From Andalucia godoyi And28 (lineage: Eukaryota > Protista > Jakobida), in contig VRVR01000008.1 in NCBI GenBank assembly GCA_009859145.1, positions 71,494 to 135,493 of the forward strand: a stretch of DNA of 64,000 nucleotides, read 5' to 3'. Position 1 is the stretch's first letter, and each line of letters opens with the position of its first letter. A program made the position numbers and the translations under genes. Below are positions 5,265-59,110 of this stretch, in pieces. The notes below the pieces were generated by a model, which had not been told where the DNA came from, ran no database searches, and saw only the letters and a list, made by a program, of their open reading frames with translations.

Positions 5265-5577
5265 ATAGAGTACCGTAAGATGTGGAGCGTACAGCTGTTG
5301 AAAGGAGAAGTAATTATAGTACCGTTGCCACTTCTTGCGATACTGTATGATGAAGCAGTCTAAAGTGCACGCAAACAAAGACACTGCCACGCGCCATGCG
5401 CATGCGTTTGCTATCTTAGCAACTCTGTCACACGATGCCCGATTCGTTTCGTCCCATTTTGATCATGAAATCCTTATATAAATACGCCGCCGCGTTGCAT
5501 TATGCATGATGTTGGGTTGCAACATTGATTATGGATGATCAGCGATGATTATCCGTGGTTAGTGTACAATGTAGGCG
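5265..5577 (+). mobile_element. Highly decayed Fanzor2/TnpB-like relic A with structured right end
   Basis: Broken frames give YRKM..., MMKQSKVHANKDTATR, ATLSHDARF (compare relic C INDKTAR). Two hairpins follow (5509-5525; 5531-5556 with GCGA loop), then AGTGTACAATGTAGGCG (5561-5577), 16/17 identical to the end of relic B. Confidence 0.55.
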
Positions 5578-5754
5578 TACGTCTTTTCCTGTTCTCTCTC
5601 ACCGCCTTACGAGCCACGCACGCATAACAGAGAAATTGGGAGGTCAGCTGTACTGATAAATATGTACAATTATACTGTATAGTAGAAAGAAGACAGAAAG
5701 GAAGCAAGTATGCAAACGAAAACGAAAAACCCCATTGTGACGCGGAAATGACGG

Positions 5755-6996
5755 TCATGGGAGTGGGACCAAGACGATTACACAGGCCACACACTTTCCA
5801 TGACTCGAACTCTTCCAGGTGCTCTCGGTACTTTCGTCACCAACAGCGCCAGCACCAGCACCAGTATCACCGTCAACGTCAACGACAGTGTCAGAATGAG
5901 ATGACGACATGGGAGAGAGGGAGAGGGAGAGGGACGGAGAAGAAGAGACGAACATTGATGCAGATGAGGTGCGGAGAAACGATATACCAGCGATATGATC
6001 TTGCTCCGTGGATCCGCAGACCATCTTCCCTGATCGAGCACTTACAGAATGAGCTTTTCTTCGAAGTCGTATTCGTACGCTGGTGCTTGACGCTGTTCGT
6101 TTCCCGCTCCATGCGACTTTCCCCCACTCATTTCTCTCTTCTTTGTGCTCGCTCTTTAGGAGCTCTTGAGATTGGCAGTGCTGTTGTTGCTGGTGCTGGT
6201 GCTGGTGTTGGTGCTGGTGCTGGCGATGACGTTTGCAGTCCGAAGCGTTAGCGAGCGCACAAGCCGGAATCGCAAAAGAGGAAGAGCAGGAAGAAGAACA
6301 AGAAGTGGAAGAAAAAGAATGAAAGATGCGAAGAAGACACGGAACGTCGCTTGGAGAAAAGAGATCAAGGACGGAAAAGCGCGGGTCTGCGAGCTGTTCG
6401 CGGGTGAACGGAGACTCTTCAACAAGCGGAGCATTGAACCGATGCAGGGATCCCCGGAGAATGTCCACAAGCACTGCAGCAAACGGCGAAGTATCGACAA
6501 ATTGGCAAGCACTCGCCAAACTCGTTGCAAACACTGGGTCCGCGTCCGCAATGCCATCCAGTTGGTCTGAAGTCCGGAGTGGTTTTGACATCGGGAAAAA
6601 CCCTAGGCCTAGGCCTAGCCCTGACGCTGGTCCTGATGCGGACGGCTGCGGTTGCTTTGCGGGAGTGCGCTTTGCTGATGGCGGCGACACACCATCACTA
6701 TTGGAGTGCGAGTGCGAGTGCGAATGTGTGCTGGCAGAGGCGTTAGAGTTGAGGTGGTCAGAGTGAACACCGGTGATTGTGCTTGTGTCTGTGCTTGTGC
6801 TTGGTGCGGGAGTGCAATTCGAGTCCGAGACAAGGGACATGACGCCGGAGACCATGCACTTGAGACCGCGAGAAAACGAGCATGAGGATGCTTTAGCAGG
6901 GATCGAGGTTGGGATAAAGTCAGATGGAATCGACGACGCAGCAGGTAACGGAGGAGGCGGGAAGAGACTCGCCTCGGATTTCATAGGAGACGTCAT
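5755..6996 (-). CDS. PAS-like protein homologous to the C-terminal module of the Zn2Cys6 array, lacking the zinc cluster
   Basis: DPVFATSLASACQFVDTSPFAAVLVDILRGSLHRFNAPLVEESPFTREQLADPRFSVLDLF...VRIRLRRK...HIAGISFLR aligns by eye with the array C-termini (e.g. DPVLGEQLEAARLSV...YAFNSPLL...FSREEI...FDVFDL...YTAGVSFLR). No Cys6 motif in this ORF or in minus-strand frames up to the tRNA. Confidence 0.75.
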   Translation of the reverse strand: MTSPMKSEASLFPPPPLPAASSIPSDFIPTSIPAKASSCSFSRGLKCMVSGVMSLVSDSNCTPAPSTSTDTSTITGVHSDHLNSNASASTHSHSHSHSNSDGVSPPSAKRTPAKQPQPSASGPASGLGLGLGFFPMSKPLRTSDQLDGIADADPVFATSLASACQFVDTSPFAAVLVDILRGSLHRFNAPLVEESPFTREQLADPRFSVLDLFSPSDVPCLLRIFHSFSSTSCSSSCSSSFAIPACALANASDCKRHRQHQHQHQHQHQQQQHCQSQELLKSEHKEERNEWGKVAWSGKRTASSTSVRIRLRRKAHSVSARSGKMVCGSTEQDHIAGISFLRTSSASMFVSSSPSLSLSLSPMSSSHSDTVVDVDGDTGAGAGAVGDESTESTWKSSSHGKCVACVIVLVPLP

Positions 6997-7522
6997 GCAA
7001 AGCAAAAACAAAACATATATATAAATCTCCCAAACTTGAGCGGAAAATCCAGCAACGTGCAGAACTAGGAAAAAGAAAAACGAAAAGATGAGGGAAGGGG
7101 GAAAAAATGAGCAGAAAAATGTGATAAAGAAAATAAAATAAAATAGAAACTATGAACAAAGAGCCGCCCACGGAGTAGTAGTAATGGAAAGACAGAGTTG
7201 TACTGATATGGAGGAAGTGATAGTGTATATAGATATGGATCGAAGCGCCGAAAATAACGTGAAGAAAGTACAAAGATGGCACGCGGAGCAGCGGTACAAA
7301 AACAGCAGAAGGAGAAAGGGGTAAAATCATCGTTGCGGAGAGTGGCGACTCGGGCGGCTTTTTGAGGCTCCGGAGTCTGAGGGAAATATACAGCGCACGC
7401 CAGAGCACTTTGCTCTCTGAATTGCCGCTTAATCCCCGCCGATGACATCAGAAAACGTCAACATGCGGAGATGAAAAAGATTCCATAATTTTTTTGTGTA
7501 TAAAATTTTTAAAAAAGTAATT

Positions 7523-7605
7523 TGACAGCTGTGGGATTTGAACCCACGCATCCGGAGATACCACGACCTGAACGTGGCGCCTTAGACCAACTCGGCCAAA
7601 CTGCC
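7523..7605 (-). tRNA. tRNA-Leu(CAG)
   Basis: GGCAGTT/AGCTGTC acceptor stem, TGGCCGAGTTGG D arm, CCACG-TTCAGGT-CGTGG anticodon arm, long variable arm, GGTTCAAATCC T arm, and a T6 Pol III terminator at 7516-7511. Confidence 0.96.
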
Positions 7606-9130: not shown

Positions 9131-9182
9131 CTGTACAATTCAGCGTTACTCCACCGCTAGTGCAGTCCGCAAAAGGGCTAAG

Positions 9183-17114: not shown

Positions 17115-17498
17115 AAATACTGTTTGAAAGAAAGCTTTAAAAAACTCCCCGATTCTCCGATACTCCGCTTTTTATTGCCGCTGAGCCGCTTTTTTTTTTC
17201 CATCCGTCTTTTCATTCGTAGGCTTTCTGGACTCTGCTGCTCATTACTCGACATCCGATCATCGATACTCTTTGTATTACTCTGCATACTGTTTGTTCGA
17301 TTCCTTTGTTGTTGTTGTTTTCTCGCGTTTTTTCTTTTCTTTTCTCCTTTTCCTTTCCGCCTTTCCTTCATTTATACATTTATTTATTTATTCAACTGCT
17401 GATTGTATATTTATTGGCACGCCTTGTCATCATCATCATCATATTGCTCTCTGTGTCACGTTTCTGGACTTGCTCTGACTTTGACTCCTACTCGTCTC

Positions 17499-19682
17499 AT
17501 GCATCCATCCGCTGCGCCGCCCGCGTCCTCGTTGCCATACTACCATCTTGCGCCGTCTTACCCTCTTTCGTTTCCCACTCCACCACCCCTTGCTGCTCCG
17601 CTTTCACTTTCCAGCCATTTCCAATCTCCGCTTTCCTCTTCCACAGCCACGCATCACAATCATCCTGCATACCAACCACAGCAGGTGCTCGAACAGCATC
17701 ACCAGTTGTTATTGCAACAACAGCAACAGCAGCAGCAGTATTTGGGGAAATCTGGACGGGGCGCTCAAGGAACACACGAGACGATCCGAAAACGAACCCG
17801 TCATGCGTCTCCGTCGCACTCTTCTTCGGACAATGAACGCCAATTCCGGCATCCCACTCATGGTCGTCGTGTAGATGAGGACGAGGAAGACGAAGACGAA
17901 GACGAAGACGAAGACGAGGATGCGCTTCCCTCCAGGCCCGACATCAACCACCCCACAACCACTAACAACAACGGCAATAGCAATAGCAATAGCAATAGCA
18001 GTAGTAGCAGTGCGCTTGGAAATGCAAGTGCGAATGGACAGAGAGTTGCAAAGGCATGCACAGAGTGTCGATCCCTGAAGCGATCGTGTGATGGAAATGT
18101 CCCGTGTTCTCGGTGTGTAGAGCGCGGTGTTGCTCATCTGTGCTCCTATATCCCGCGCAAGAAGCGAACGACTTCCAGAAACAAGCACAAGGTATCTGAG
18201 AATAATACCAGCACCAGGAACAGCAAAGCCATTGCGAATGGGGTTGGAGGCGGGATCGCTGATGCCGACACAGGAACGTCCTCGGCAAGCACGATCTCCG
18301 TGGCGATGACGCAAGCTGGGCGATCCACTCCAAGCGCATTTTCGCCTTTGCCATTGCGCCCCGCACGTGTTGTTTCTCCCTCTGCTAGTCACTCTACAAA
18401 TGTCAGTAGTGCTGGGTCTTGTGCGACTGGTGGAGGTCATGCCACACCGTTACTCGGATACTCTCCTCTGCCGGAGTCATCGTCAACATCATGTTCGTCC
18501 TCGTCATCCTGCTCCTCATCATCGTCTGCTGCTGCTGCTGCTGCTGCTGGTGCACCTGCATCAACATCGTCGTCATCAGGTACGAGTGCTGCAGTCATGC
18601 CATTGTCATCATCGTCCTTACAGCTTCTTCAGTCGCAGTCGCAGTCACAGTCACAGTCGCAGTCGATGGGAATCGCGATGTATGAGCGATCGCCGTTCAA
18701 CTTTTCAGTCTCGAATTTTATTGCAACGCCGACAATCACATCAGATTTCTGGGGTGACGCATCTCCATTTACTCGATCGTTTTCCAATTCGATGCTTCCG
18801 TCCTCTTCCACGGGAGGAAACACGTCCACGATCGCATCGGCAGAAATCAAATCAGAGCTTCCATCTGCTTCCTCTTCTTCTTCCTCTTCTTCTTCTTCCT
18901 CTTCCTCTTCCTCTTCTTCCTCTTCCTCTTCTTCTTCTTCTGCTGCTGCTGCTTCCTCATCTTCTTCCTCTGCTACTGTTGCCACTGTATCCGATGAGGG
19001 CTCCGGTTCTGCTGTTGATGAAGAAGCGACGAAAGCGTCAATGACAACGACCGAAGCATCAGGTTTGCATCCGCTGGCGATGGAGATTATGAATTCGCAA
19101 GACCCGTTTGTACGGTCGAGTCCGATGTTCCGGTACTTGTCAAAACACATTGCGGCGATTGATGTACCGACGCTTCATTTTGTTCGCGAATTTCTGCGAA
19201 CAGTTTCCGAGGAAGAACAGAAAGCCGGTGCGGGAGGGTCACTTTGCCCTGGAAAGATGCATGCAGACTCTATTGATGTGGATGCGTTGCTTCGAAAGGA
19301 TGCCGTGTTGCGAACCGCGATTGAGAATGCAGTGGGCGTGCTCAACACGCTTGCATTTCCGGCGTTCATTATGGTGAACAAGGGCCGAATGTACCGGTAC
19401 AACAGCGCACTCGTCGAGCTCAGTCCATTCACTCGCGAGGAGCTGGACGCTGAGCAGTTCGACGTGCTCGAGCTCTTTGCAGAAGAGTCTCTCGTCAGCT
19501 TCATGCAGACCATTCTCAGGATTCGACACAATCGAAGACTCAATTCCATCACAATGAAGTCTGTCCTCAAAAAGAAGAACGGCGACAGAACTCCATACAT
19601 TGCAGGATGGACATTCTTCAAGGATCGACACGACACCATGATTTGTGGCTCTTTGGTTGTCCTCATGCCTTTTCCCACGTAG
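17499..19682 (+). CDS. Zn2Cys6 + PAS-like transcription factor, array member 1
   Basis: CTECRSLKRSCDGNVPCSRCVERGVAHLCSYIPRKKR; C-terminal FPAFIMV..GRMYRYNSAL..FTREEL...KKKNGD PAS-type fold; likely ATG at 17499. Confidence 0.9.
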   Translation: MHPSAAPPASSLPYYHLAPSYPLSFPTPPPLAAPLSLSSHFQSPLSSSTATHHNHPAYQPQQVLEQHHQLLLQQQQQQQQYLGKSGRGAQGTHETIRKRTRHASPSHSSSDNERQFRHPTHGRRVDEDEEDEDEDEDEDEDALPSRPDINHPTTTNNNGNSNSNSNSSSSSALGNASANGQRVAKACTECRSLKRSCDGNVPCSRCVERGVAHLCSYIPRKKRTTSRNKHKVSENNTSTRNSKAIANGVGGGIADADTGTSSASTISVAMTQAGRSTPSAFSPLPLRPARVVSPSASHSTNVSSAGSCATGGGHATPLLGYSPLPESSSTSCSSSSSCSSSSSAAAAAAAGAPASTSSSSGTSAAVMPLSSSSLQLLQSQSQSQSQSQSMGIAMYERSPFNFSVSNFIATPTITSDFWGDASPFTRSFSNSMLPSSSTGGNTSTIASAEIKSELPSASSSSSSSSSSSSSSSSSSSSSSSSAAAASSSSSSATVATVSDEGSGSAVDEEATKASMTTTEASGLHPLAMEIMNSQDPFVRSSPMFRYLSKHIAAIDVPTLHFVREFLRTVSEEEQKAGAGGSLCPGKMHADSIDVDALLRKDAVLRTAIENAVGVLNTLAFPAFIMVNKGRMYRYNSALVELSPFTREELDAEQFDVLELFAEESLVSFMQTILRIRHNRRLNSITMKSVLKKKNGDRTPYIAGWTFFKDRHDTMICGSLVVLMPFPT

Positions 19683-19946
19683 TCGAGGGCAGTCCACGCC
19701 CATCTCTCTCTGTACAACATACGGTCACTATCCGCATCTTATGATTGCATTGGCATTCAGAATTCCGGATGGTCTCTGTCGAAATGATATGATATTCTCG
19801 TCTCGTCTCGTCTTTTTTGTTCTTTTTATTTATTTTTTATTTATTTAATAGGCATCGTTACGATGTTGATGTAAATGTAAATGTACACCGGAAAGAAAAA
19901 AGTAAAAGTATAAATAATCAGAGAGAGGGAAGGGGCGGAAAGTAAA

Positions 19947-21707
19947 CTATTCGGACGGGAGCTCTGGGAGCAACACGGAGGGTATAGGAATGAGCTGCAT
20001 GAGCGTGCACAGGACGATTCCGTTTTGCGAGTGTCTGATGAAGGTGATCGCGTTGAGGTATTCTACGCGTTGGTGGTCGCGACGTTTGACATGGCATCGA
20101 AGAGACAGTGTTTGCATGCCGCGGTTCATATGCGCACTCATGAGCTGCTGGATGCCGTCGTTCATAACACCTTCGTCCGAGTTGACCTTGACGTCGAACA
20201 GGTCAATCACTTCGAAACTACCACTCTCGAGATCGGAACGGGGGAAAGGAAGCAAATCCACAAGGACACTGTTTACACGGCTCAGACAGCCCTTGTGATC
20301 CACGATAAAGGCCGGAAACAATGTTGAATCCATAATCCGGTGTGCCTTCTCAAGGCTGTGAGCAGCCGTCGGATCCACAACCGCAATGTTTTTCAGAAAA
20401 TCGGGCCCAAGCTGCGCTGCCATCATGAGCTCATCACGCAGTTTTGTAAAGAGAAACGGCCGATGCTGCAGGATAAGCTGCAGAGCGTCGGGCCGCACGT
20501 TGTGAAGATTTTTAGACAACAAACGAAACAAAGGAAATTTCTCAAGCAAATCGTCCGGGGTGTCGCGCAACAATAGATGGAAGAGTTGCATCGTCGACAG
20601 CGATGCAGCTGTTTGCGAACTGATAACGGTACCCGTTGATGCACCGGAAGTCGGCAATGCACCACTGGATAAAGACGAAGATGCGGAGGCAGACATGGAA
20701 GACGAAGACGAAGATGACAATCCTGGAAATGCATGGTCAGTACTGCTGGAGCCAAATGCTGGAGTAAACGACGCAAGGTCAAAGAGCCAAGACTCATTGG
20801 CGTGTGACGATGGAGAATGGGGTGAAGCGAATGTTGCAAACTGCCCAGAGTCCAACTGGCTGAGGAAACTCATCAGATCGGATGGAAGATCGCCAGCACC
20901 AACCGAAGGAACCAGGGATTGGAGTGGGTTGGTGTTAGCGATCGCATCAAACTGGATGCCATGCCCATTCCCGTCGCTGGATCCAAACGATTGGTTGCCA
21001 ACACTCAATGATTTCGCCGTTTCTGACGCTGACAATGTTGATAGCGACGATGATGACGACGAAGATGAAGAAGACGAAGAAGACGAAGAAGATAAAGCAG
21101 ATGGAGACAATGCACTCGCAATAGGCATAGAAATTGTAGCTTCCTTCGAAAATGCATTTCCAACAAACGACGTATCCGAGCTTGAATTGGACCGCGATCG
21201 ATATTCATGAGACTGCGGTGCTGGCGACGACGACGACATAAAGTCATTTGATGCAGAGGAGTATGGCGATGCATAACTGTGGCTTGGCGAAATCGTCTGA
21301 AGGCGCCGCGTGGCGACCAAGTTTTGAGCATTGAGCAGCTTTGGAATGGGTACATTGACGCTCTCTGGACCAATTCGGCGTTGCTTCTTTTTCCGTGGGA
21401 GATACGAACAAAGATCTCCAATTCCTCGCTCAATACACCGCCCACACGGTTCTTGTCCATCACAGGACCTCTTAATCTCTCGGCAACAAATACACGCCTT
21501 CGGCACACGCTTGGTGCGCGAATTGTCCGCCGACACATCGTTTGGATTCACAGAATTCCCTCGGTCTTCTTCTTCTTCAACCTCGTGGTCTCCTCTTCCT
21601 CCACCACCACCCCCAGCTTCTTGAACAGACGAAACAAATATCGTTACTTCTGGATGTGGTCTCTTCTTTGATGCAACTTCAGCTATGGAAGTCGACTGTT
21701 TTTGCAT
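19947..21707 (-). CDS. Zn2Cys6 + PAS-like transcription factor, array member 2
   Basis: CICCREIKRSCDGQEPCGRCIERGIGDLCSYLPRKKK; C-terminal FPAFIVDHKG..RVNSVL...VKRRDHQRVEYLNAITFIR; likely ATG at 21707. Confidence 0.9.
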   Translation of the reverse strand: MQKQSTSIAEVASKKRPHPEVTIFVSSVQEAGGGGGGRGDHEVEEEEDRGNSVNPNDVSADNSRTKRVPKACICCREIKRSCDGQEPCGRCIERGIGDLCSYLPRKKKQRRIGPESVNVPIPKLLNAQNLVATRRLQTISPSHSYASPYSSASNDFMSSSSPAPQSHEYRSRSNSSSDTSFVGNAFSKEATISMPIASALSPSALSSSSSSSSSSSSSSSSLSTLSASETAKSLSVGNQSFGSSDGNGHGIQFDAIANTNPLQSLVPSVGAGDLPSDLMSFLSQLDSGQFATFASPHSPSSHANESWLFDLASFTPAFGSSSTDHAFPGLSSSSSSSMSASASSSLSSGALPTSGASTGTVISSQTAASLSTMQLFHLLLRDTPDDLLEKFPLFRLLSKNLHNVRPDALQLILQHRPFLFTKLRDELMMAAQLGPDFLKNIAVVDPTAAHSLEKAHRIMDSTLFPAFIVDHKGCLSRVNSVLVDLLPFPRSDLESGSFEVIDLFDVKVNSDEGVMNDGIQQLMSAHMNRGMQTLSLRCHVKRRDHQRVEYLNAITFIRHSQNGIVLCTLMQLIPIPSVLLPELPSE

Positions 21708-21973
21708 TATTTCAAAACAACTAAAATTAACATAAGAAAGCAGCACAAGAAGCAGCTCGATGATAATTAGCAACAACCACAACCAAAACAACAGCAGGAA
21801 CAGGAACAGGAACAGGAACAATAATAAATAATGATATGATAATAAACGATACTTCAGTAACAAATATAATCGAAAGAGAACAAAATAGTACTTTGGAAGA
21901 AGAAGAAGAAAACCATTGCTACTCGTTGGAATAATCGGATTGCGGCACTTTGAAGGATGAAAGAAAAAGTCCG

Positions 21974-22258
21974 ATGCGGAAGTATACATAAGCAGAGACG
22001 GTCGTGCTTATGCACGCTCGGCCAAAATTCAGCCGGTGACACAGGCTCCGCATTTTCGACACTCTTTAACGCAGCATCCGTAGCCATCTATCATTCTATC
22101 ATTCGTTGGTTTCACTTTTTGCAACGTCTGTTCCATAAGGCGACCGAGTATCGCGAGCGCCATGTTACCAGGGGCCTATCCGCTTCCCGGCAACAGGATG
22201 CAAGACTGAATATGCATGTCTATTCGTAGATATGCATACTCAGTGTATAATGTAGGCG
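21974..22258 (+). mobile_element. Fanzor2/TnpB-like relic B, internally deleted, with omegaRNA-like right end
   Basis: WFHFLQRLFHKATEYRERHV joins directly to GGGGCCTATCCGCTTCCCGGCAAC...TGTAGGCG. Near-identical to blocks in 62238-62715 but lacks the zinc-ribbon/RuvC-III segment. Confidence 0.8.
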
Positions 22259-22616
22259 CACTTGGGTGCGATTCCCGATTACAAAAACAGGGCGCTCCTC
22301 GGTGTTACGCCAGCGCGTCAATAGCTTGCAATATCGTCACAGTTCGCACTGCAAACAAGACAAGACGAGCTGCTTACTTATTAGATGATTCGCGGACGCC
22401 AGTATAAGAGAAGGGGAAGAAAAAACAAAGGAAAAAGGAAAAAGGAAGAAGAAGAAAGCGAAACATGAAATTATGTACGTTTATGCGTCTCTGCCCGATG
22501 GAAAGTAAAATAATAATGAAAAAAGAATGAAATGAGCATAATAAAATAACAGTCGATCTAGATTAGCAGCAGCACTAGTGCTATGAGACGAGGTGGGAGT
22601 GCAATGCTACGTTCCG

Positions 22617-24884
22617 CTATCGTGTGATTGGATAAAGCTGAAGAGATGCACCAATCATGCGGAGTGTCGATGGGTTTCTCAAAACAACAAGAGACGCAAC
22701 ACATTCCTCGGACGATCCGGAAGGAGAATGCTTCAGCGAACAGCGGAAATGAACGCGCCCGTTATGTTCCAGATCGACCGCACACTGCATGGCCTGCGCG
22801 ATCCGCGCAGAAGAAGAAGAAGTAGTAGTAGTAGTAGTAGAAGAACTGGTAGAAGAAGAAGAACTCGGTTGCAAATGCGAGCTTGTTGAGAATGGCATTC
22901 CAAAGTAACCAGCAGTCAGCGTAGCCGCAATGCACACAGTCGGCAGTGCAAACTCTAGAATGTCAAAGAGATTGGCATCGACAAGAAAAAGATTATCGCT
23001 TCCAATACTTCCAATCTGCGATTTGCCGTCATAATTCACATACTGCGCACCCAGGCGATTCACCATGTGAACGGTGCAGTTGGGACTCATCCAAAAAGAC
23101 GGCGTCTGGACAGAGATGTTTGGGTCCGCCATAACAGATGCTCCCAGAAACGCACGATCCTCTATCTGCATATTGTTCACAAAATGCGAGTTCGACGCAT
23201 CCGTCCCTTCGAGTGAGGATGCTGCTGCGAGAACCATTCGCAACGAAAACAATACTTGCACTACTTCCAGCGACAAGCTTGCCATCCACGATGTGTCGGA
23301 CGCCGCTTTCTGCAGTGCCTTGTACAGTCCCGTGGAAGCAAATAATACAGAATGCGGCGTTTCGACTAAATCCTTCAGATACGCATTCATCGAAGGGCCG
23401 TTCAGGTTATAATTCAAGGAATGATTGCCGCTGATGCTCAGCCCTGGCTCTGCCGCAGCTCTGCTGTTGCTCGTACTATTGTTCGTACTATTGTTCGTAC
23501 TCGAGCTGCTGCTCGACGACTTGGAAACACCAGAAGTCGGTGAAATGGAAGATGCTGAATTGGAGATATACGACGTCGTTGTCAAGGACAGTCCGTTTTT
23601 GCCAGAATCATGGTCAGCACTGCGGTTGGAATGCGCATAGTCGCTATAATCGTGGAAGGTGTACTTGCTGACGCTCTTGTGATCCAGCGAGAGAAATGGA
23701 GAAGAACTGGCCATGTGGTCCGAATTAGAGTTGGCGGAACCACCACTCCCTATCCGCGAGCCACTGGCAATGCTTCCTGCTACACAGGACTCCGCATTCT
23801 GAAGAGGAAGTGGATGAGAGTGTGTATGTCTATTGTTGGAAGCCACAAAGGTGGAGGCCAAGGAGGATGCGGAGTTGGCAGATGATGATGCACTCGCGGG
23901 TCCATGATGATGGTGAGCGGTCGCCAATCCACTGCTCCCAGCACAAGCCGATGTAGACGGTGTGTTTGAGCCGGCGGTAGAAAGAAACGCATCTCCAATG
24001 GGCAATGAGGGAACCGGTACCGATGGCTTTCGAGTCGATTTCTGCGAGTGTTTCTTTCTTGGAACGTATCGACACTCATCTGGAATCCCGCGTTCGACGC
24101 ATCTGGAGCACGGGGTCTTTCCATCGCAGGCGCGCTTAATCTCACGGCAGCATACACAAGCAGCTGGGATTCTGACTGCCTTTTGATTGGCATCGGCACT
24201 GCTCTTTCGGCTCCCTCCTGGTCCTCCGAGAGACGCCGCCAAACACCCATGGATGACGGAATTGTTGTTGTTCACGTCAAAGAAATCTTCTTCCGAGGAA
24301 CATGGACTCGTCACATCCTGGATGTCCATGGGTGAATGCACGGAGCCCAACGCAACTTTTGAAGTAGCATGTCCGTTTGAAAACTCCTCCTTAGCGAAAC
24401 TCTCAGATCGATCGTGAGTGCCAACAACACCGTTTCTGAAACCAAGTTGGAGCACGGACGCATCCAGTACGGGGCCCTTGGGAATGTCAATTGCTGGTGC
24501 AAACGCGGGGGGAAACAGCATGCCATACTGCGACTGCAGAGCGGTCCATGGATCGGAGTGACTGGCAATTTCCAGATCGCCGTGCAGCCTCGACGGGTCG
24601 GAATTGCTGCCCCCTGGACCAAATGAATCGCCGTTCTGCTGGGCTACCGATTGCGGGAAAGAGCTGCCACTCAAGAACTGCTGTGGATTGAAGAACGGAG
24701 GCGGCTGAAAGTTGAACGCCGGCTGCACGGTACCGTTCGCCGCAAGAAACGCGCTCAATGTCTCGAAACTCAAAATTGGTGGAGGAGGCGGGGGCACAGC
24801 ATTTGCAGTTGAAAGACCCTGTGATCCACTGATGTGGTCTAGCCCAGACTGCACAGGATTCTGGAGGGTTGTCCAAGGATCCAT
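22617..24884 (-). CDS. Zn2Cys6 + divergent PAS-like transcription factor, array member 3
   Basis: CVCCREIKRACDGKTPCSRCVERGIPDECRYVPRKKH; C-terminal PSFWMSPNCTVHMVN...LFDILE...FRCSLK...CVASLVVLR; likely ATG at 24884. Confidence 0.88.
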   Translation of the reverse strand: MDPWTTLQNPVQSGLDHISGSQGLSTANAVPPPPPPILSFETLSAFLAANGTVQPAFNFQPPPFFNPQQFLSGSSFPQSVAQQNGDSFGPGGSNSDPSRLHGDLEIASHSDPWTALQSQYGMLFPPAFAPAIDIPKGPVLDASVLQLGFRNGVVGTHDRSESFAKEEFSNGHATSKVALGSVHSPMDIQDVTSPCSSEEDFFDVNNNNSVIHGCLAASLGGPGGSRKSSADANQKAVRIPAACVCCREIKRACDGKTPCSRCVERGIPDECRYVPRKKHSQKSTRKPSVPVPSLPIGDAFLSTAGSNTPSTSACAGSSGLATAHHHHGPASASSSANSASSLASTFVASNNRHTHSHPLPLQNAESCVAGSIASGSRIGSGGSANSNSDHMASSSPFLSLDHKSVSKYTFHDYSDYAHSNRSADHDSGKNGLSLTTTSYISNSASSISPTSGVSKSSSSSSSTNNSTNNSTSNSRAAAEPGLSISGNHSLNYNLNGPSMNAYLKDLVETPHSVLFASTGLYKALQKAASDTSWMASLSLEVVQVLFSLRMVLAAASSLEGTDASNSHFVNNMQIEDRAFLGASVMADPNISVQTPSFWMSPNCTVHMVNRLGAQYVNYDGKSQIGSIGSDNLFLVDANLFDILEFALPTVCIAATLTAGYFGMPFSTSSHLQPSSSSSTSSSTTTTTTSSSSARIAQAMQCAVDLEHNGRVHFRCSLKHSPSGSSEECVASLVVLRNPSTLRMIGASLQLYPITR

Positions 24885-25060
24885 CGCTGATCTGATGTGA
24901 CAGCAGCCGGAAATCAGAAAAAGGACACAAGAGCCACCAGATGAACCACAGGTCGACAAAACGGGCGGGGGGAGGAAAGCCAAAAGGGTCCAAGTGTGCA
25001 GATCGGTTCTGAGCAAGCACAAACAAAATGAACTCACAATCGCTGGAAATTGATACTCGG

Positions 25061-25108
25061 TCTCTCTGTCTCTCTGTCTCTCTGTCTCTCTGTCTCTCTG
25101 TCTCTCTG
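25061..25108. repeat. (TCTCTCTG)6 microsatellite upstream of array member 3
   Basis: Six perfect 8-nt units read directly. Confidence 0.9.
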
Positions 25109-25589
25109 ATTAGCAGTGGCGGCAGCAGTAGTGGCAAAAGAAAAAAAGAAGAAGAGACAGGAAGAAGAAGAAGAAGAAGAAGAAGAGAGAGAGGAAGATA
25201 GATGTATCCAGGATGAAGCAACAAAATTGGAGGAAGACAGCCAGTGAACGGGAGATGTGACAGCACGGAAATCCTAGCGGCAAAAACAATTAAAAGAGGG
25301 AGTCGATGCAGCCTGGGAGGAAAGGGGGAAAAGAGGGAGTCCACAATCAACAACGGAATCGAAAGCAGGTTCCCTGAAGGCGAGGAGAGTGCAATCAGCA
25401 ATGGTTCCCTCCTTCGAGATGAACGGGAAGAGTCCGATACAGTCACAGACGACCAGCAAGCGAGCACGGTTCCGCAGTTTCCATTACCTCGCAGGCTGTC
25501 AACAGCATACAGAGAGCTCATGCATGTCTATCATTTTTGATCCCGACAGCAAGCATCGTCGAATTCGACTGCAATTAACGTTTGCTGCG

Positions 25590-26130
25590 GCGGTCTGTAC
25601 ACTTTGGACACTCGATTGCGAGCACTACAGATTCGTCGTCGATGCAAGACGCGTCAGGTTTCCCCCCAAGCGCCAATTGGCTGCATCCTCCAGACACTTA
25701 GACGTTCTGCTGCTCCAGAAGCTGTCGTCCTTTTGAGAAGGGGAGACGTTGCTGGGCCACGACATCCCTGGTACTACACGCACAAGCAAAAAACCACGTC
25801 TCGCTTGCCAAACGTTCCCCAACATGTTATCCACTCTTTTGCCTGCTTTACCCCACTCACCTCACCCAGAAATTATCGAAAACTGGCCCACTGACCAATG
25901 TGAGCGGTACGATTGTGTCCTGTTGCGACATCTGGAATGGTGTTGAAAAAGAAGGACGACGAATTAACGACAAGACTGCTCGTCGGGGTGCTGCTTGTGG
26001 TCGCTTCCAACTCCGACAAAGGCTGCTGCACAATGCGACAGAATACGCGGGCCGCGAGACCCACTTTGTGACCGAGGAGCACACCTCCAAGAAGACATGT
26101 GGACTTTGGGGCATCATTCATGCGCGGCAA
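25590..26130 (+). pseudogene. Fanzor2/TnpB-like relic C (frameshifted coding remnant, no right end)
   Basis: Stitched frames give YRKLAH..CERYDCVLL..TSGMV..EGRRINDKTARRGAACGRFQLRQRLLHNATEYAGRETHFVTEEHTSKKTCGLWG. The segment 25870-26130 is clear; the left boundary is tentative. Confidence 0.75.
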
Positions 26131-26439
26131 GACGGAATCAAGGTTTTATTTATTTATTTATTTGTTTTTGGGTTTTGTTTTGTCATTTTGCGAATCAGCA
26201 GCAGCATCGCCACGATGCAAAAAGCGCCCTTTGCCCCTTTTTTTGTGTTGCTTCCTCTTCCCCAGCGATGGAGGCCAGATTCCAAAACAGATTGGATTCC
26301 AGACAATGGAATAAAATACTTCAATATCATTACTTTTTTTTAAAAAATTTAATAGATAGAATAATACTAAATAAAGAATTAAAAAATCGCATCGTGTGCT
26401 TGTCTCCACGGTTCCGTCGTTTGGTTCGCGACCACGCAG

Positions 26440-28026
26440 TTACATCATTAGATCAAACGATTGTGCGGAGGCCGCAAACTCCAGGGCCGATCCGGCATTC
26501 GGCAGAGCATGGACAACCATAAATAAGACGCGGTGCGAGCTGTGCCGCAGAAACGACACTCCTGCAGTGTATTCAACGCGTTGTTTGTCGCGCCTGCGGA
26601 AACTCAGCGGGCAGGATATTGCATCCAGTTTTGGATTTTCGTGGGCGTCCAGGAACATGCTGATGCGTTCAGTCCAGTTCGACAACGGATCCACGAGGTC
26701 AAAGACATCAAAGTCTTCTCGCTCGATTTCTTCTCTTGAAAAGTCGATGACGTTCAGCAGTGGCGAGTTGAATGCGTACAATCTGGAGCCGGCGATGATG
26801 AACGCTGGGAACCGGAATGTCTGCACTGACAAACGAGCAGCTTCTAATTGTTCTCCCAGAACCGGATCCGACTTTGCAAGCAACAGGGCATCCGAGTATG
26901 TTGGGACGAACGCCCGCGCCTCTGCATCGACCTTTAGGAATCGCGATGCATGCTTTAGAATGATCTGGAGAGACTCGAGGGGAATCCGGTCTTGATTGCG
27001 AATCATAAATCGGTACAACTGTGACTCACGAAGCTTTGCATCCGGCGTCTCTCGCAGCTGCTTCAAGACGGCCTCTCGAGTTGGGTCGTTCACATCCCGG
27101 AAGACAGGGCTCGAGAAAAAAGAAATCGGCGGAAATCCAAACATATCACTCAGTTGATGCAGACTGTCGACAATGCTCAGGTCGTCCGCACACAGCGGAA
27201 ATGGTGGTAATGTGGATGACAGCACGTTGGGGGCGTTCGTTCCAGAACAAGGTCCCACAGACAGCGAATTTCGGGGGAGGGGTGATTCGCTTGCAAGCCG
27301 CGGAGTCTTTGAGGCCGGTTCGTCGTGCATTTCGAGACCATCCGAGACAGGCGACTGATGCGTTGCTTTCCGAGTGTACGCATACACAAAACTGCTATCC
27401 GGATCCGAGGAGTGCTGCTTTCCATGTTCGTCGCATGTTTCCTCCAAGACGCCCTCGCCTACTGCATTTACACTTCTTCTTCTTGTTCCCCCTCTGCCCA
27501 TTTCTCTTTCCAGCTCCTTTTCCTTCTTCTTGAGACGCGGCCTTCGAGGCACATACGTGCATTCATGTTCAATGCCTCGCTGAACGCACCGGCTGCACGA
27601 AGGCATTGCGGCATCGCAGGCGCGTTTAACAGCTCTGCACTGCAAGCAAGCACGTGGCGCACGACTTTGCTCTACAATTCGAATAAACCCAATAATACGA
27701 TGGTCCTGTGTTTGAGATTCGCTGTCGTTTTCTAACGACAGCTGTGAAAAGGAAGCTGGATTGGCGACCATTTGCGACACTGCGCTTGTCGGTCGACCTC
27801 CCAAGGACGGCTCCGAGGACTTTGCGCTCGCTGTTGTTGTTGTAGCTATCGCTGTCGAAGGTGGTGGTAGTTGCGGTGGATTTGGTAGCAGTAATAGTGG
27901 TGACGATGTTGACGAGGATGACGGTGGTGACGATGGACCCGCTTCATGCAGCGATTGGGCATCCATCGCGAAGGGTGCATCATCGGGCAGCGCGGAGCCT
28001 ACAGAAGAACCCAAATGGTTGTCCAT
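26440..28026 (-). CDS. Zn2Cys6 + PAS-like transcription factor, array member 4
   Basis: CLQCRAVKRACDAAMPSCSRCVQRGIEHECTYVPRRPR; C-terminal FPAFIIAGSRLYAFNSPLL...FRRRDKQRVEYTAGVSFLR; ATG at 28026 or 28125. Confidence 0.9.
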   Translation of the reverse strand: MDNHLGSSVGSALPDDAPFAMDAQSLHEAGPSSPPSSSSTSSPLLLLPNPPQLPPPSTAIATTTTASAKSSEPSLGGRPTSAVSQMVANPASFSQLSLENDSESQTQDHRIIGFIRIVEQSRAPRACLQCRAVKRACDAAMPSCSRCVQRGIEHECTYVPRRPRLKKKEKELEREMGRGGTRRRSVNAVGEGVLEETCDEHGKQHSSDPDSSFVYAYTRKATHQSPVSDGLEMHDEPASKTPRLASESPLPRNSLSVGPCSGTNAPNVLSSTLPPFPLCADDLSIVDSLHQLSDMFGFPPISFFSSPVFRDVNDPTREAVLKQLRETPDAKLRESQLYRFMIRNQDRIPLESLQIILKHASRFLKVDAEARAFVPTYSDALLLAKSDPVLGEQLEAARLSVQTFRFPAFIIAGSRLYAFNSPLLNVIDFSREEIEREDFDVFDLVDPLSNWTERISMFLDAHENPKLDAISCPLSFRRRDKQRVEYTAGVSFLRHSSHRVLFMVVHALPNAGSALEFAASAQSFDLMM

Positions 28027-28449
28027 TGACTTTCCAAATATTCGGCAAATCTTTAGGAGATAACACAAGATAAGGCGACGCACTTGTATGAAGAGGTGTC
28101 TTTTCTTAGCTGGAGGAGTTTTCATGTATTTATCCTCCACGTCAAAAGATCAACATCTGGATAATCCGGACAGAATCGCCGAACTGCTTTGTCGGAGTCG
28201 GGACATTTCCTCAACAGCCGATCAGCGACTAGACGAGCAGACTGTGCGTGTATGATGACTCCATGAGAGTATATATATATATGTATGTATGTATTTTTAC
28301 TATTTATTTTTGCGCTGAACAGTGAACAGAGTGCAGTCATGTCTTGAAAGCCTGCAAGGTAAGCCAGGATAGGGGAAAGACAAAACATAATGCAATGTGA
28401 TTGCTTTTTTATTGTTTTTAAACTAAAAACATAAATTAAAAAATCATTG

Positions 28450-30354
28450 CTAATCCTTTGGAAGGGGTGTGAGTTCAATGAGGGTGTAGAAGATGGAGCC
28501 AGATTCCGAGTGGCGGATGAACGACATCCCGGCAACGTACTGCACAATTTTGTGATCCTTCCTCTTCAGCACGACGGACGCGGAATAGGATTGTATTTTT
28601 GGATTTTCTTGTGCGTTCACGAAACGCCTCATCATCTTGGTTAGGGAACACGATGAAATATCGACGAGGTCCATGGGATCAAAAGACGGATTCTCGAGCT
28701 CTGCCCGCGAATAAATAGAATCCTCCACAAGCGAGGAATTGAACTTGTACAAGCCCCGTGCACGAGACAGAATGTACGTGGGAAACTTTCTACCGTCGAC
28801 GATCAATCGAGCAGATTCGAGAGCCTGGCGCATCAGCGAATCTGACGCGAGAATAACGTCGATGCGAGACAAACTGGACAACACAAATTGTTCGTTTTCA
28901 ACAATCCGCTCCACAGTCTTCCGATTGGAGGTGAGGAAATCAAAGAAGTCTTGGTCCAAGCAGCCCCCCATTTTTTGCAGAAATCGATGGAGACCTGAAG
29001 AGCGAATCCTTTCCGTGGGTGCTACCAGGTATTCAACAACGGCAGGATGCGAGCACAACAACGGAGCAATCGGTGGGGATCCCGAAGAAGAGGTCGATTC
29101 CGAATGCGTAGAATCTGCCAATGACGATGACGACGACGACGACGACGACGACGCAGTCTCGCCGCCGGGATGCTTGTCTTCGGAAACGGGGGCTGTAGAA
29201 CGCTTGCTATGCGGATTCTCCGTCCCATCATTCTTTTCACTGGCTGTCGGTCCTTGTGACGACGCGCTTTGGATGCAAGTCTGCGTCGGATGCTGCGCTG
29301 GCTGGGGCGACTGCTGAAGCGCATGCGAGCTCGACGACCCGACATTGCAAGGCTCAAAATGCGACACCGAAAACCGAATATCAGGCGTCGGAATCGGAGA
29401 GTTGAAGAACGAATACGGTGGAGAATGGTCCACCAAAGAAACACCAAAAGGAAACATGGAATCGATTATTCCACTGGACGACGACGCCGATCGGGAAGGA
29501 CACCACGGTTTTGAGGACTCCGACTGCATCATCCCTTGCAGCGATCCGGCAGCATTACCCGAACCAAATGCTGCAGGAATTGCCGCTTGCGAAGCACTCT
29601 GACCGCCGTGGAGGCTCGAACACGGAATAATGGGAGAAGCAGGTGACGGCGGAATCGCGGTGGACCGGCTCCGCATCTCCATCTGCCGTCGGTTCTCATC
29701 AGCCCCTTCTACGCTACCATCTGATGCGGAATGGTCGTCGTCGCCCTCGTCGTCCTCCTCATTGTCATCGTCTTCGTCGTCCTCATCATCATTATTCTCT
29801 TCTTCTACTCCTCGTTGTCGTTCACCATGCGTCATACTCGATCGATTGCCGTTTGTTTTTCTCTGATTCGATGGATCAGAACCGTTTTGCTTCTTCTGTC
29901 TTCGTTCCTTCTTCTTCCTCGGAATATAGGAACAAGAATGGGCGCAGCCACGTTCCACGCATCTCGTGCACGGATATCCGCCATCGCAGGACCGCTTAAT
30001 CAGTCTGCAAGCAACGCACGCTTTTGACACGCGTCGCTGGCGTTTTGCAGCCTGCGATTGCGATTGCGACGGTACCTCAGAAGCTCGGTCTCTCTTCAGA
30101 TTCATCTCGGAAGACGGCGGCGCCTGATGCTGCCGTTGAACTTGCGGCTGCAGTCGCTCATGCTGCTGTTGCTGATGATGCGGATGAGGATGAGGATGAA
30201 GTCCTGAAGATGAAGCTTGGGATATAATTTCCGACTGAAACCGCAAGATTTCCTGGACTGTTTGTGGCGGGAACGCAGAGAAAATCGATGCATTGCTCGG
30301 ATGCATTCGAGGGAATAACGATGCGTCAACTTGGGGACTGTGGTTATGTTGCAT
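28450..30354 (-). CDS. Zn2Cys6 + PAS-like transcription factor, array member 5
   Basis: CVACRLIKRSCDGGYPCTRCVERGCAHSCSYIPRKKK; C-terminal FPTYILSRARGLYKFNSSL..YSRAEL...LKRKDHKIVQYVAGMSFIR. Confidence 0.9.
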   Translation of the reverse strand: MQHNHSPQVDASLFPRMHPSNASIFSAFPPQTVQEILRFQSEIISQASSSGLHPHPHPHHQQQQHERLQPQVQRQHQAPPSSEMNLKRDRASEVPSQSQSQAAKRQRRVSKACVACRLIKRSCDGGYPCTRCVERGCAHSCSYIPRKKKERRQKKQNGSDPSNQRKTNGNRSSMTHGERQRGVEEENNDDEDDEDDDNEEDDEGDDDHSASDGSVEGADENRRQMEMRSRSTAIPPSPASPIIPCSSLHGGQSASQAAIPAAFGSGNAAGSLQGMMQSESSKPWCPSRSASSSSGIIDSMFPFGVSLVDHSPPYSFFNSPIPTPDIRFSVSHFEPCNVGSSSSHALQQSPQPAQHPTQTCIQSASSQGPTASEKNDGTENPHSKRSTAPVSEDKHPGGETASSSSSSSSSSLADSTHSESTSSSGSPPIAPLLCSHPAVVEYLVAPTERIRSSGLHRFLQKMGGCLDQDFFDFLTSNRKTVERIVENEQFVLSSLSRIDVILASDSLMRQALESARLIVDGRKFPTYILSRARGLYKFNSSLVEDSIYSRAELENPSFDPMDLVDISSCSLTKMMRRFVNAQENPKIQSYSASVVLKRKDHKIVQYVAGMSFIRHSESGSIFYTLIELTPLPKD

Positions 30355-30652
30355 TTATGAACAGCATGTGAAAGAGACGCTGGGGAATGGATAAACAAGC
30401 AGTAAGAAAAGGGACTAGAACATGGACGAAGCGTGCGCGAAGCAAAATAAAAATAAACACACACACGCACACACACATACACATACACAGAGAAACAAGC
30501 AAATCAACATGACAAGACGGAAAAGAGGGAAATGATTCGCAATCTTCGTTTCTCCAATCGGGAAAACAGAAATTTTCGGGAGAAATTGCCGCGTTTACAG
30601 AAGATATGGAGTAGGGTCATGTTTTACGACTTTCTTGAAAACCTTTCGCGAA

Positions 30653-32773
30653 TTACGAGTTGAGGGGGACAAGGATGATGACGGAACCTGCGATGTGGCC
30701 AGTGGTGATTCTGAGAAAATGGAAGCCAAGGACATGGGACACCGGTGCAGAGCCTTTCACTATGTGTAAATCAACGGTTACCGAGGCTCGATTGGTGGAG
30801 GATGTCGCTGCCTGCGCTTGCTGGAAGGCAAACAACACACGGGCAAAGTGCGGTGGCTCAATGAGGTCCAGGACAGACCGGGTGCCGGCGACCAAGTCAT
30901 CCACAGTCGTCACACCGCACAGAAGCAACATGTCTGCAAACTCTGTGTTCCAGAACACTGCTTTGCCAGACAGAGAAATCACTGCAGCTGGAAACACAGA
31001 CGACTCCACCAATTTGCGACCACGATCATATGCAGTGTACAGGATTGGATGTGCGTCGACAAGGGACTGCCACGGTCGAAGAAAAACAGATTGCTGGCCG
31101 CTACTCTCCAATAGCGACCGTCGATACAACAACACGGCAGAAAGGACAGAGTCGTCAAGATCCAGAATCCGCTGGCGTGCATACTTCAGGAACATACACT
31201 GAGACAGGGCAGTCACGGAAGGGTTGTTTGAATGAAGAGATGGAAACGCAGAAGACGACGCCGACGCGGACGACGACGCCGATGCGGACGACGACGCCGA
31301 TGCGGACGACGACGACGATGCGGATGATGATGAAGGCTGTGCGCTATGAAAATAATCATCCGAACAGTCGTTCAGCAATGCTGCAAGATCGATGATCTTT
31401 TGAGGATCCTGATCCAAAACGGCCTCGATCTGCGTGATCTGGATGACGCTTGACGATGTCGCAGACTCGTCTGAAAAATTGGCAGGTGCACCGACGAAAA
31501 AGTCCAAGTTATAAAAATACGGATCCAAGTTCGTTGCGCTCGCACTGCTGCTCACCGTGTTTGAAGCGACAGCAGAGGGAATCGGGACGGAAGGATTCAG
31601 CGCAGTAGCAGACGTGACTGCAGCCGGAATCGCATAAACTGGCGTGGATGATGACGGCATCGACGACGATGTGGATGGCAGGAATGATGCTGCTGCTCCC
31701 GCTGCCGCCAACGGTAATGATGTTGGTAAACCAGAAGAGGCAGTGGATAAAACAGATGGACCGGAGCCTGGAACTGCAGAAGAAGAGGACGACGACGACG
31801 ACGCCGACGTCAGTGATGAAGAAGATACAGGAAACATTGTGGCAGGATTTGAAGAACCAGTGGGAGTGGACATCATGGGATGCGCAATGACAAACGAAGC
31901 CGAGTCCGGAGTTCCGTACGAAGGAAAATTTGCAGCCGATGATCCAATCGTCACCGAGTTGAAGAACCGGTCCGTTTGGAACGGCAATGGTGTCAGCGAC
32001 GACGGAAGAGACGCGTATGGATAAGACATGACGGGTTGAACCACTGGAGTGGAGCTTGGCGTGGACCCAGACGCTGCTCCATAGGATGAAGACTGTAACA
32101 ATGATGAAGGTGACAATGAGAAAGACGCAGTGCTTGCAGCAACAACAGAAGATGCTACGGTGGAGGTGGAAGACGAGGGTTTCTGTGTCGAAGAAGCCGA
32201 GTGGATAAGTGCGGGGTGTCGCTCCATGGAGCTCGCCTGTCGATTGTTTCCAGTCACACTGGAAGTTGTGATTCGAACACTGCTGCCCGATTGGCTGGTC
32301 GAGAGCATTCTCCCAAGCTTTGAATTCTTTCGAGGGACATAGCAGCACAATTGGGAAGTACCGCGCTCGACGCATCGCAAGCACGGAAGCTGGCCATCGC
32401 ACTGCCGCTTGCCGCGTCGGCATTCCGTACATGCGCGTGGAATACGCTTTCGCGAATTCGCAGAGGCATATGGATGATCTGGTTTTCGACTGTTATCCTC
32501 TTCTTCGTCATCATCGTCATCATCGTCGTTCTCCTCCTGCTTTAGTCGTTGCGGTTGTAGTCTTTCCGTGAGACGCTGCTCTGGGTGATGTGGCTGATGC
32601 TGCTGCTGGTGCTGCTGGGGTTGATGTTGCGACTGATGCTGCGGATAGGATTGATATTGCGGAGTTGCGGAATACTGCTGGACTAGAGAATACTGATGTG
32701 GGTGATGTGACTGCATGATAATTGGCGTGTTCCCATTTTGCAGTTCGATATGGAGTGGCGTAACGCAGTCCAT
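30653..32773 (-). CDS. Zn2Cys6 + PAS-like transcription factor, array member 6
   Basis: CTECRRGKRQCDGQLPCLRCVERGTSQLCCYVPRK; C-terminal FPAAVISLSGKAVFWNTEFADML...SVLDLI...HVLGFHFLR; ATG at 32773 or 32716. Confidence 0.9.
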   Translation of the reverse strand: MDCVTPLHIELQNGNTPIIMQSHHPHQYSLVQQYSATPQYQSYPQHQSQHQPQQHQQQHQPHHPEQRLTERLQPQRLKQEENDDDDDDDEEEDNSRKPDHPYASANSRKRIPRACTECRRGKRQCDGQLPCLRCVERGTSQLCCYVPRKNSKLGRMLSTSQSGSSVRITTSSVTGNNRQASSMERHPALIHSASSTQKPSSSTSTVASSVVAASTASFSLSPSSLLQSSSYGAASGSTPSSTPVVQPVMSYPYASLPSSLTPLPFQTDRFFNSVTIGSSAANFPSYGTPDSASFVIAHPMMSTPTGSSNPATMFPVSSSSLTSASSSSSSSSAVPGSGPSVLSTASSGLPTSLPLAAAGAAASFLPSTSSSMPSSSTPVYAIPAAVTSATALNPSVPIPSAVASNTVSSSASATNLDPYFYNLDFFVGAPANFSDESATSSSVIQITQIEAVLDQDPQKIIDLAALLNDCSDDYFHSAQPSSSSASSSSSASASSSASASSSASASSSAFPSLHSNNPSVTALSQCMFLKYARQRILDLDDSVLSAVLLYRRSLLESSGQQSVFLRPWQSLVDAHPILYTAYDRGRKLVESSVFPAAVISLSGKAVFWNTEFADMLLLCGVTTVDDLVAGTRSVLDLIEPPHFARVLFAFQQAQAATSSTNRASVTVDLHIVKGSAPVSHVLGFHFLRITTGHIAGSVIILVPLNS

Positions 32774-33100
32774 GGAATTCTGCTTTGAAAACCAGGAAGG
32801 AGCAGCAGTGAGCAGAGTCCCGGGATTTCGATTTTGCTTTCAATACCTGCTTTATAAACCAAAGGCGCGCTTTTGCTCGTGATGGGCGAAGAGCAAACAC
32901 ATAATAAATAACAATAATAAAATCATTATTTTAATATGTATTAGATTAATTTTAAAAAATCGTTTTTACAAATTCGTCAAAAAGGAAAAGATTCGGCTCG
33001 GGTTCCGAACCTGACGAAATGCCGCCCGGACCTTGTCAGTTCGCTCCCCCTCTTCAGTGACATTATCCGGACATCGAGGAGACCTTTTGTCATTTCATTT

Positions 33101-33311
33101 ACAGTATTTCTCCTCCAACCCAAAACCTCCCCAAAACATTTGTCTCGTCTAAGACAGCTTTTATGACGTAAAGGGACTTCTTTTTTTTAATTTATTAATA
33201 CAGTCGGCATCAGCAGCGCCCATCATCGATTACAAGGAATCGATTGTCAGTATTCGACAGCGATATCACAGCCATCCACCAGACGTTTGGGTTTGCAGGG
33301 TTTATAAAAAT
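33101..33311. mobile_element. MITE-like element copy 2 (inverted relative to copy 1)
   Basis: CTCCTCCAACCCAAAACC...GTTTGGGTTTGCAGGG ends; colinear blocks with the reverse complement of 16866-17123, including a 29-nt identity. Confidence 0.75.
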
Positions 33312-33901
33312 CAGCGCAAAAAAGAATCCTGGAAACGGTCGTAGAGCTCACAACCCATCTACAGTATCACAGACGCCCCTTACGTGAGACTCCAAAACTC
33401 GCTTGAACTGGGAATGCCCGGTGGATTCCCACGCAAGCACGGTGTGTCGCTGGATTCGCAAGCATCCTCATGGGCATCCTCTTTGGGTGCTGGCGGAACC
33501 GAAATATAAAGGGAGTACAAGGTCATTTCCCCACGGCCGCAACATTCTTCCGTCCGCAGCACCCGTCGATTGGTTCGAAATTCCACAGAGGCACGACAAC
33601 TACGGTCGGTGGCGACGACAGAGTCCCTGAAAGAGGGCAAGGATGAAGACGAAAAGGATAAACCAATTTTTCTTTTGACACAACAAAATATAACACAAGA
33701 GGAAAGGAGAAACATAAGACGAGAAAGGGATTTCGGAATTGAATTTTATGGAAACGCCCTTATGCGGGAAGAAGAGGAGACTCGCATTGCGTTTTGCTGG
33801 TTTCTCTTTTTTCGTATTCATCAAAAATCCTCACCCCTCAGATTTTTGATACTTTTATTTAAAATAAAGATAGTCACTACTATACACGAGGAATGAGCTC
33901 T

Positions 33902-59062: not shown

Positions 59063-59110
<48 letters not shown>

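Follow-up and report, generated by a model that had tools for sequence, protein, structure and literature searches.

A PAS-module gene without a zinc cluster near a Zn2Cys6 array of Andalucia godoyi: candidate regulatory partner or decaying relic

The locus and its open reading frame

The window analysed in this work, a stretch of 64,000 nucleotides from contig VRVR01000008.1 of Andalucia godoyi And28, contains an array of seven genes for Zn2Cys6 factors, A1 to A7, and, outside this array, a gene that shares a C-terminal module with these factors and is referred to here as the focal gene (Table 1). By coordinates the focal gene and the array are separated by 10.4 kb (17403-6996), which agrees with the distance of about 10.5 kb given in an earlier note on this DNA, and four unrelated genes are located between them. 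On its 5' side, the focal gene is bordered by approximately 510 bp of intergenic DNA and then by a tRNA-Leu(CAG) gene, past which lies a GILT-like gene. The NOG1 gene on its downstream side (2100-4991, minus strand) extends past the 491-aa ORF and contains at least two introns of approximately 270-290 bp, the donors of which, at 3548 and 2880, are GTATGT; the genome has few introns, yet it is not intron-free. In the approximately 2.3 kb between the GILT-like gene and a PGAP1-like gene (8516-10828), the sole ORF of at least 200 aa (8185-8895) overlaps the GILT-like gene, and spurious Cys-rich frames are present. Elsewhere in the window are genes encoding an aromatic amino acid lyase of the HAL/PAL type (14675-16450), a Plant_NMP1-like protein (38135-39181), XRN1 (52709-57835, 1708 aa) and a HAD hydrolase (57836-59116), and the plus strand at 39966-52661 carries an uninterrupted ORF of 4231 aa for an ALFY/WDFY3-like BEACH-WD40-FYVE protein with PH_BEACH and a concanavalin-like region.

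The focal ORF runs from a first ATG at 6996 to a stop codon at 5755-5757, within a stop-to-stop frame (5758-7149, minus strand) that is open upstream of the ATG as far as 7149. On the coding strand, the run TATATATA is found at 7013-7022, approximately 20-30 nt 5' of this ATG, and because of it the mRNA may begin 3' of the ATG, in which case a later Met would be used. In-frame Met codons are present at 6984, 6855, 6840 and 6591, the last of which would give a protein of 278 aa that is almost pure PAS. The N-terminal 142 residues contain no Pfam domain, no zinc cluster and no pre-PAS motif of the kind described below.

Table 1. Features of the window and of the focal protein. Positions are those of the window, except in the last line, which refers to L001, L002 and L003.
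Feature	Position	Strand	Remarks
NOG1 gene	3516-4991	-	downstream of the focal gene; 491-aa ORF
Focal ORF	5755..6996	-	413 aa from first ATG; one exon
I-beta, aa 403-411, then family-typical C-terminus VPLP	5764..5790	-	from alignment and focal model
Insertion 3, aa 346-400	5797..5961	-	low complexity derived from hexanucleotide repeats, disordered, H-I loop
H-beta, aa 331-342, DHIAGISFLRTS	5971..6006	-	from alignment and focal model
G-H hairpin loop with insertion 2 (~13 extra aa), aa ~313-330	6007..6060	-	from alignment and model
G-beta, aa 304-312	6061..6087	-	from focal model
Insertion 1, aa 232-300	6097..6303	-	S/C-rich with HQ repeat, disordered, F-alpha/G-beta loop
PAS N-half, A-beta to F-alpha, aa 173-230	6307..6480	-	includes family core motif HRFNAPLVEESPFTREQL
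N-cap helices, aa 144-169	6490..6567	-	pLDDT ~85-90
Focal N-terminus, aa 1-142	6571..6996	-	S/T/P/H-rich, low complexity, predicted disordered
tRNA-Leu(CAG)	7523..7605	-	upstream bound of the intergenic space of the focal gene
GILT-like gene	7782-8516	+	past tRNA-Leu, upstream of the focal gene
Zn2Cys6 array, seven genes	17403..35776	both	putative partners of the focal protein
A1	17403-19682	+	array Zn2Cys6 gene
A2	19947-21989	-	array Zn2Cys6 gene
A3	22617-25037	-	array Zn2Cys6 gene
A4	26440-28140	-	array Zn2Cys6 gene
A5	28450-30354	-	array Zn2Cys6 gene
A6	30653-32773	-	array Zn2Cys6 gene
A7	33902-35776	-	array Zn2Cys6 gene
Public gene calls for P0018 and P0001	L002 5482-6741, L003 4555-5814; L001 2-907	+	truncated

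The shared module and its fold

When the focal protein was compared with the array proteins by blastp, matches were obtained to A1 (E=9e-13), A2 (2e-9), A5 (1e-8), A4 (6e-7) and A7 (5e-5). These matches cover approximately residues 148-232 of the focal protein and the C-terminal regions of the array proteins, with a second collinear block formed by the last strands, and the homologous part of the focal protein is its C-terminal 270 aa. A6 was tied to this module by a module HMM and by the multiple alignment. The HMM matched the focal frame and six of the array genes but not A3, the C-terminus of which scored just 1.1 bits against the family HMM with a marginal alignment, and the module should therefore be counted as clearly present in six array members and as doubtful in the seventh. 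Thus, the claim of the earlier note that the focal gene has the same C-terminal module as the seven array factors stood for six of them, by blastp, HMM and alignment, and is doubtful for A3. A3 has a good Zn2Cys6 cluster, an almost undetectable PAS domain, large insertions and poly-S/T runs, and this member of the array may be in the course of diverging or degenerating.

Motifs common to the focal protein and the array in the multiple alignment include FPAF, YRYNSALVELSPFTREEL, F.VLDLF, LKRKD..V.Y.AG.SFLR.S and a C-terminal L.PLP. The focal protein has the C-terminal PAS module that characterizes the array family, with the NSxLVExSPFTREEL core and the PLP end, and its score against a leave-one-out module HMM (96 bits) can be compared with 45 bits for A6 and 116-145 bits for the others. 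At the DNA level, a blastn search of positions 5000-7700 against the rest of the window found no similarity. A recent segmental duplication was therefore rejected as the origin of the focal gene, and the absence of DNA similarity to the array indicates an old paralogue instead of a fresh fragment.

Structure prediction and fold comparison showed the module to be a PAS fold. AlphaFold2, when supplied with the family alignment, modelled the A1 module with a pLDDT of 89 and a pTM of 0.83, as N-cap helices followed by two strands (33-37 and 41-45), four helices, the last of which spans 74-88, and three strands (94-102, 108-119 and 126-135). In the focal model the order of elements is H-H-E-E-H-H-H-H-E-E-E, with all PAS elements present as in the A1 module: helices at 144-152, 154-169, 189-194, 199-202, 209-212 and 215-230, and strands at 173-178, 183-187, 304-312, 331-342 and 403-411. 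The N-half of the focal model had a pLDDT of 72-91 and the strands one of 60-82, with approximately 60-70 for G-beta. Both models contain the arrangement by which the PAS fold was defined here, in which two strands, a helical connector (C-, D-, E- and F-alpha) and three further strands form a five-stranded antiparallel sheet. When the models were searched against the PDB with Foldseek, the top 50 matches of the A1 module were all PAS/LOV domains (best E 2e-6), and the 50 best matches of the focal model were all PAS domains as well, with E-values of 0.02-0.4, which are weak because the loops are long, and with TM values to the focal model of up to 0.66. These results bear out the PAS assignment made in the earlier note.

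The curated PAS profiles of Pfam did not match the focal protein at E<=1 and reached only E ~0.15 with A6 and A7, and the best match of the family profile among PDB sequences, at 0.019, was below significance. In a profile search of 1.84 billion representative proteins, the close relatives were followed, among the matches listed, by long proteins with several matched stretches each (E 1e-16 to 1e-5), and the one that was read, P0012, is a tandem multi-PAS protein. Matches of this profile to multi-PAS proteins of bacteria are in line with the PAS fold.

The missing DNA-binding part

Each of the seven array proteins matches Pfam Zn_clus (PF00172) above the gathering score, and PF00172 is the only Pfam family found in the array genes, whereas the focal protein gave no match of any value to Pfam, PF00172 included. 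When the whole 64 kb were searched in six frames with a Zn2Cys6 regular expression and with a family zinc-cluster HMM, only the seven array ORFs were detected (E 1e-20 to 1e-25), with no significant match on either strand at positions 5000-17000, including around the focal gene. The N-terminal signature of the array family, a Zn2Cys6 cluster followed by Y.PRKK, is absent from the focal protein. A further signature of the family is a conserved helical motif that directly precedes the PAS domain (HP..EIL..DP..R.S..FRFL.K...). Its HMM detected six array genes, with E-values from 1e-12 to 1e-23, but gave no match at E<=1 in any frame around the focal gene. Therefore, the absence of a Zn2Cys6 cluster from the focal gene, as claimed in the earlier note, was confirmed, and since neither zinc-cluster nor pre-PAS coding was found in any frame near the gene, so was the further claim that no upstream exon supplies a cluster before the tRNA gene. 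The focal gene is of transcription factor family origin, has kept the putative interaction domain and has lost the DNA-binding domain, a pattern that it shares with dominant-negative proteins such as Id, IPAS, VVD and the microProteins.

One explanation of this pattern is an artefact of the gene model or the assembly, in which the true gene would include a Zn2Cys6 exon, either spliced from far away or missing from the assembly. Introns do exist in this genome, as the two donors in the NOG1 gene illustrate, and relatives in public libraries that appeared to have no zinc cluster proved to be truncated where they were checked. However, no zinc-cluster or pre-PAS coding potential was found in any frame at positions 5000-17000, and the tRNA gene and the GILT gene on the opposite strand are located immediately upstream of the focal gene, so that an extra exon beyond them is implausible. 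The only strong donor-like site within the focal ORF, GTAAGT at 6045, falls inside the 13-aa insertion, and an insertion of that size is too short to represent an intron. Because donors known from this DNA are of the GTATGT type used by the NOG1 gene, none of which occurs within the focal ORF, and because the sole good donor-like site is the one in the 13-aa insertion, the possibility that the insertions of the focal gene are unspliced introns was also rejected. We consider such an artefact to be very improbable.

The family is rare, and it stems from a eukaryote that is sparsely sampled. Approximately 16 relatives of the PAS-module profile that are of eukaryote type and contain a single PAS domain were found among the 1.84 billion representatives, and searches for homologues with the module alignment returned only P0001 and P0018. 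A search with the full focal protein returned nothing, as its 8000 candidates were flooded by low-complexity words. Eight of the relatives in the representative library (P0001, P0005, P0007, P0008, P0010, P0011, P0018 and P0030) are without a zinc cluster. They were considered as evidence for a recurrent class of PAS-only proteins and were rejected as such, because both of the relatives that were checked turned out to be truncated calls: the frame of P0018 on its JGI contig runs upstream into a Zn2Cys6 cluster (zinc-cluster HMM E 5e-17), and that of P0001 runs off its 1-kb contig. The library "PAS-only" relatives of the array family are thus unreliable and give no support to such a class. The same truncations made an explicit six-frame zinc-cluster test necessary for the focal gene, and the gene passed it.

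A possible regulatory partner, relic or independent protein

The open frame of the focal gene exceeds chance. None of 3000 dinucleotide shuffles kept the 464-codon stop-to-stop frame open, and only one of 5000 did so for the 273-codon PAS part, compared with 53 of 5000 for the 191 codons upstream of it. In the trimmed PAS core, the mean identity of the focal protein to its paralogues is 0.287 (0.198-0.297 for the factors), and 74% of the family-consensus residues are kept (38-81% for the factors). In a single neighbor-joining tree of identity distances, the terminal branch of the focal protein (0.339) is similar in length to those of A4 (0.329) and A7 (0.345), with 0.404 for A6. The focal gene is an old paralogue within a Zn2Cys6-PAS family that is specific to its lineage, and it is probably still coding. 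It is a real feature, either a regulatory partner of the array factors or a decaying relic, and the evidence for the two is considered together here.

A relic would be a member of the family whose N-terminal half was removed by a deletion or rearrangement and which is now drifting, with a frame that is still open only because relatively little time has passed since the loss and because the insertions consist of repeats with triplet periods. Several observations are in favor of this explanation. The focal gene has a lower coding-potential score (0.069) than any of the array genes (0.10-0.18), and its score falls to approximately zero over the G-H strands. Substitutions have replaced the near-invariant P of FPAF and, in the G-H hairpin, four conserved residues; in this hairpin, conserved residues of the family stretch K-R-K-D-G..V.Y are lost. 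Three insertions of microsatellite type are present in a domain that is normally compact, and the first 140 codons are not compelling as coding sequence, because they stay open in 6.6% of shuffles. No orthologue was found among the 1.84e9 representative proteins or in two scans of metagenome contigs. Furthermore, the exact protein, with any of five choices of start, is absent from the public proteome within a collection of 15 billion proteins that does contain A3, A4, A5, A7 and the products of the GILT-like, aromatic amino acid lyase and YEATS genes, the window proteins there carrying the source tag 'eukprot'; this absence is weak evidence, since the simple ORFs A1, A2 and A6 are absent too. 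The core could also owe much of its conservation to the time before the N-terminal half was lost.

In contrast, other observations speak against decay: the 464 codons have neither a stop nor a frameshift, the values for branch length and core identity are within what is usual for the family, and all three of the low-complexity insertions are located in loops. The insertions are made of microsatellites with periods of 3, 6 or 9. This periodicity was rejected as proof of selection, and it is only weak evidence of it, because repeats of period 6 also occur in the flanking non-coding DNA. Furthermore, the truncation does not look recent, because no remnants of the lost domains were found upstream and the DNA has no similarity to the paralogues. 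On balance, we regard decay as somewhat unlikely, and the same applies to the account of the open frame that goes with it. If the focal gene is a relic, it merely records the loss of domains after duplication in a family that is rich in low-complexity sequence.

Alternatively, the focal protein may be a functional PAS protein that is independent of the array factors, for example one that senses small molecules or redox state, or an adaptor in signalling that makes use of the disordered N-terminus. The evidence for the PAS fold serves this explanation equally well, and four unrelated genes separate the focal gene from the array. The focal protein is also without the pre-PAS motif, which is kept by all clear members of the family and could belong to the dimer interface. 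However, the protein showed neither a partner domain nor any other motif, PAS-only proteins act mostly through PAS-PAS or PAS-partner contacts, and the closest relatives of the focal protein are the array factors themselves. An independent role appears improbable to us.

A regulatory partnership with the array factors ranks first among these explanations. In it, the focal gene is a member of the Zn2Cys6-PAS family from which both the zinc cluster and the helical pre-PAS motif have gone, with a complete PAS domain and its N-cap helices retained behind the disordered N-terminus of 142 aa. The protein may make contact with the array factors through their PAS domains and modulate these factors, most likely through non-productive heterodimers that would be unable to bind DNA as a pair, as in the cases of Id, IPAS and VVD. 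Complexes with one DNA-binding domain or none would be expected to result in array factors that are damped or re-tuned. Such binding and modulation is a possibility that we put forward tentatively. The dominant-negative or sensor role suggested in the earlier note is plausible in this tentative sense, and the structural part of that suggestion, a PAS fold without a DNA-binding domain, is supported. The narrower proposal of a dedicated PAS-only decoy, which would heterodimerise with several or all of the array factors and either titrate them or confer a signal on them, we consider unlikely. If the focal protein is produced and does bind the array factors, decoy control without DNA binding would extend to Zn2Cys6-PAS regulators. 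A true decoy would mean that an inhibitor comparable to Id, IPAS or VVD is described for zinc-cluster factors for the first time, and this in a lineage of eukaryotes that has been poorly sampled.

Paralogues that have no DNA-binding domain and titrate transcription factors are well known as a kind, and the focal gene, if functional, would add a new class of factor to them. Control by such decoys is known for bHLH, bHLH-PAS and HD-ZIP factors and for the White Collar Complex. For instance, IPAS (a splice form of HIF-3alpha), AhRR, Id and the plant microProteins (LITTLE ZIPPER) have kept the dimerisation domain and titrate members of their families, which are bHLH(-PAS) or HD-ZIP factors, without a working DNA-binding or activation part of their own. 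The focal protein is likewise a relative of transcription factors, of another family, and keeps the putative dimerisation domain, which makes it a candidate inhibitor; it is not 'micro', because it has 413 aa with long disordered parts.

In fungi, gluconeogenesis, alternative respiration and hypoxia responses are under the control of Zn2Cys6-PAS factors. Factors of the AcuK/AcuM type in this class act as obligate heterodimers on sites of the CCGN7CCG type and need the PAS domain, mutations or swaps of which alter their function (PMC12719309). The earlier note regarded dimerisation through PAS as established for these factors; this was too strong, since the role of PAS in their dimerisation is termed 'hypothesized' in the review (PMC12719309). 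A decoy in the window would, if real, be direct evidence for the PAS domain of the Zn2Cys6-PAS class as a dimerisation surface, which has so far been hypothesised (PMC12719309). The array genes resemble AcuK/AcuM (Aod5/Aod2, Ert1/Rds2/Gsm1, Pas2) in that an N-terminal Zn2Cys6 cluster and a PAS domain at the extreme C-terminus are combined in one chain, whereas the focal protein shares the PAS domain only. No sequence link between the fungal factors and the window family was seen among the unnamed profile matches listed.

The logic proposed for the focal protein, that of a PAS-only protein acting on a PAS-containing zinc-finger factor, is paralleled by VVD of Neurospora, a small protein with essentially one PAS(LOV) domain that binds the White Collar Complex and damps its activity (PMC4039372). 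However, VVD is a photoreceptor of the LOV type that binds flavin, and the zinc finger of its partner is of the GATA type, whereas the putative partners of the focal protein have Zn2Cys6 clusters. Among the papers searched, none described a PAS-only antagonist of Zn2Cys6-PAS factors. Therefore, the statement in the earlier note that no such inhibitor has been described applies to this class and not more broadly, in view of the action of VVD on the White Collar Complex (PMC4039372), and because a fungal PAS-only antagonist is already known, the novelty is narrower than was suggested there. In structure, the top Foldseek matches of the focal model were the PAS-A domains of the bHLH-PAS proteins ARNT, AHR and PER, which are PAS folds that tolerate long loops between strands; the identity of these domains to the focal protein is 7-10%, and the likeness is in fold only.
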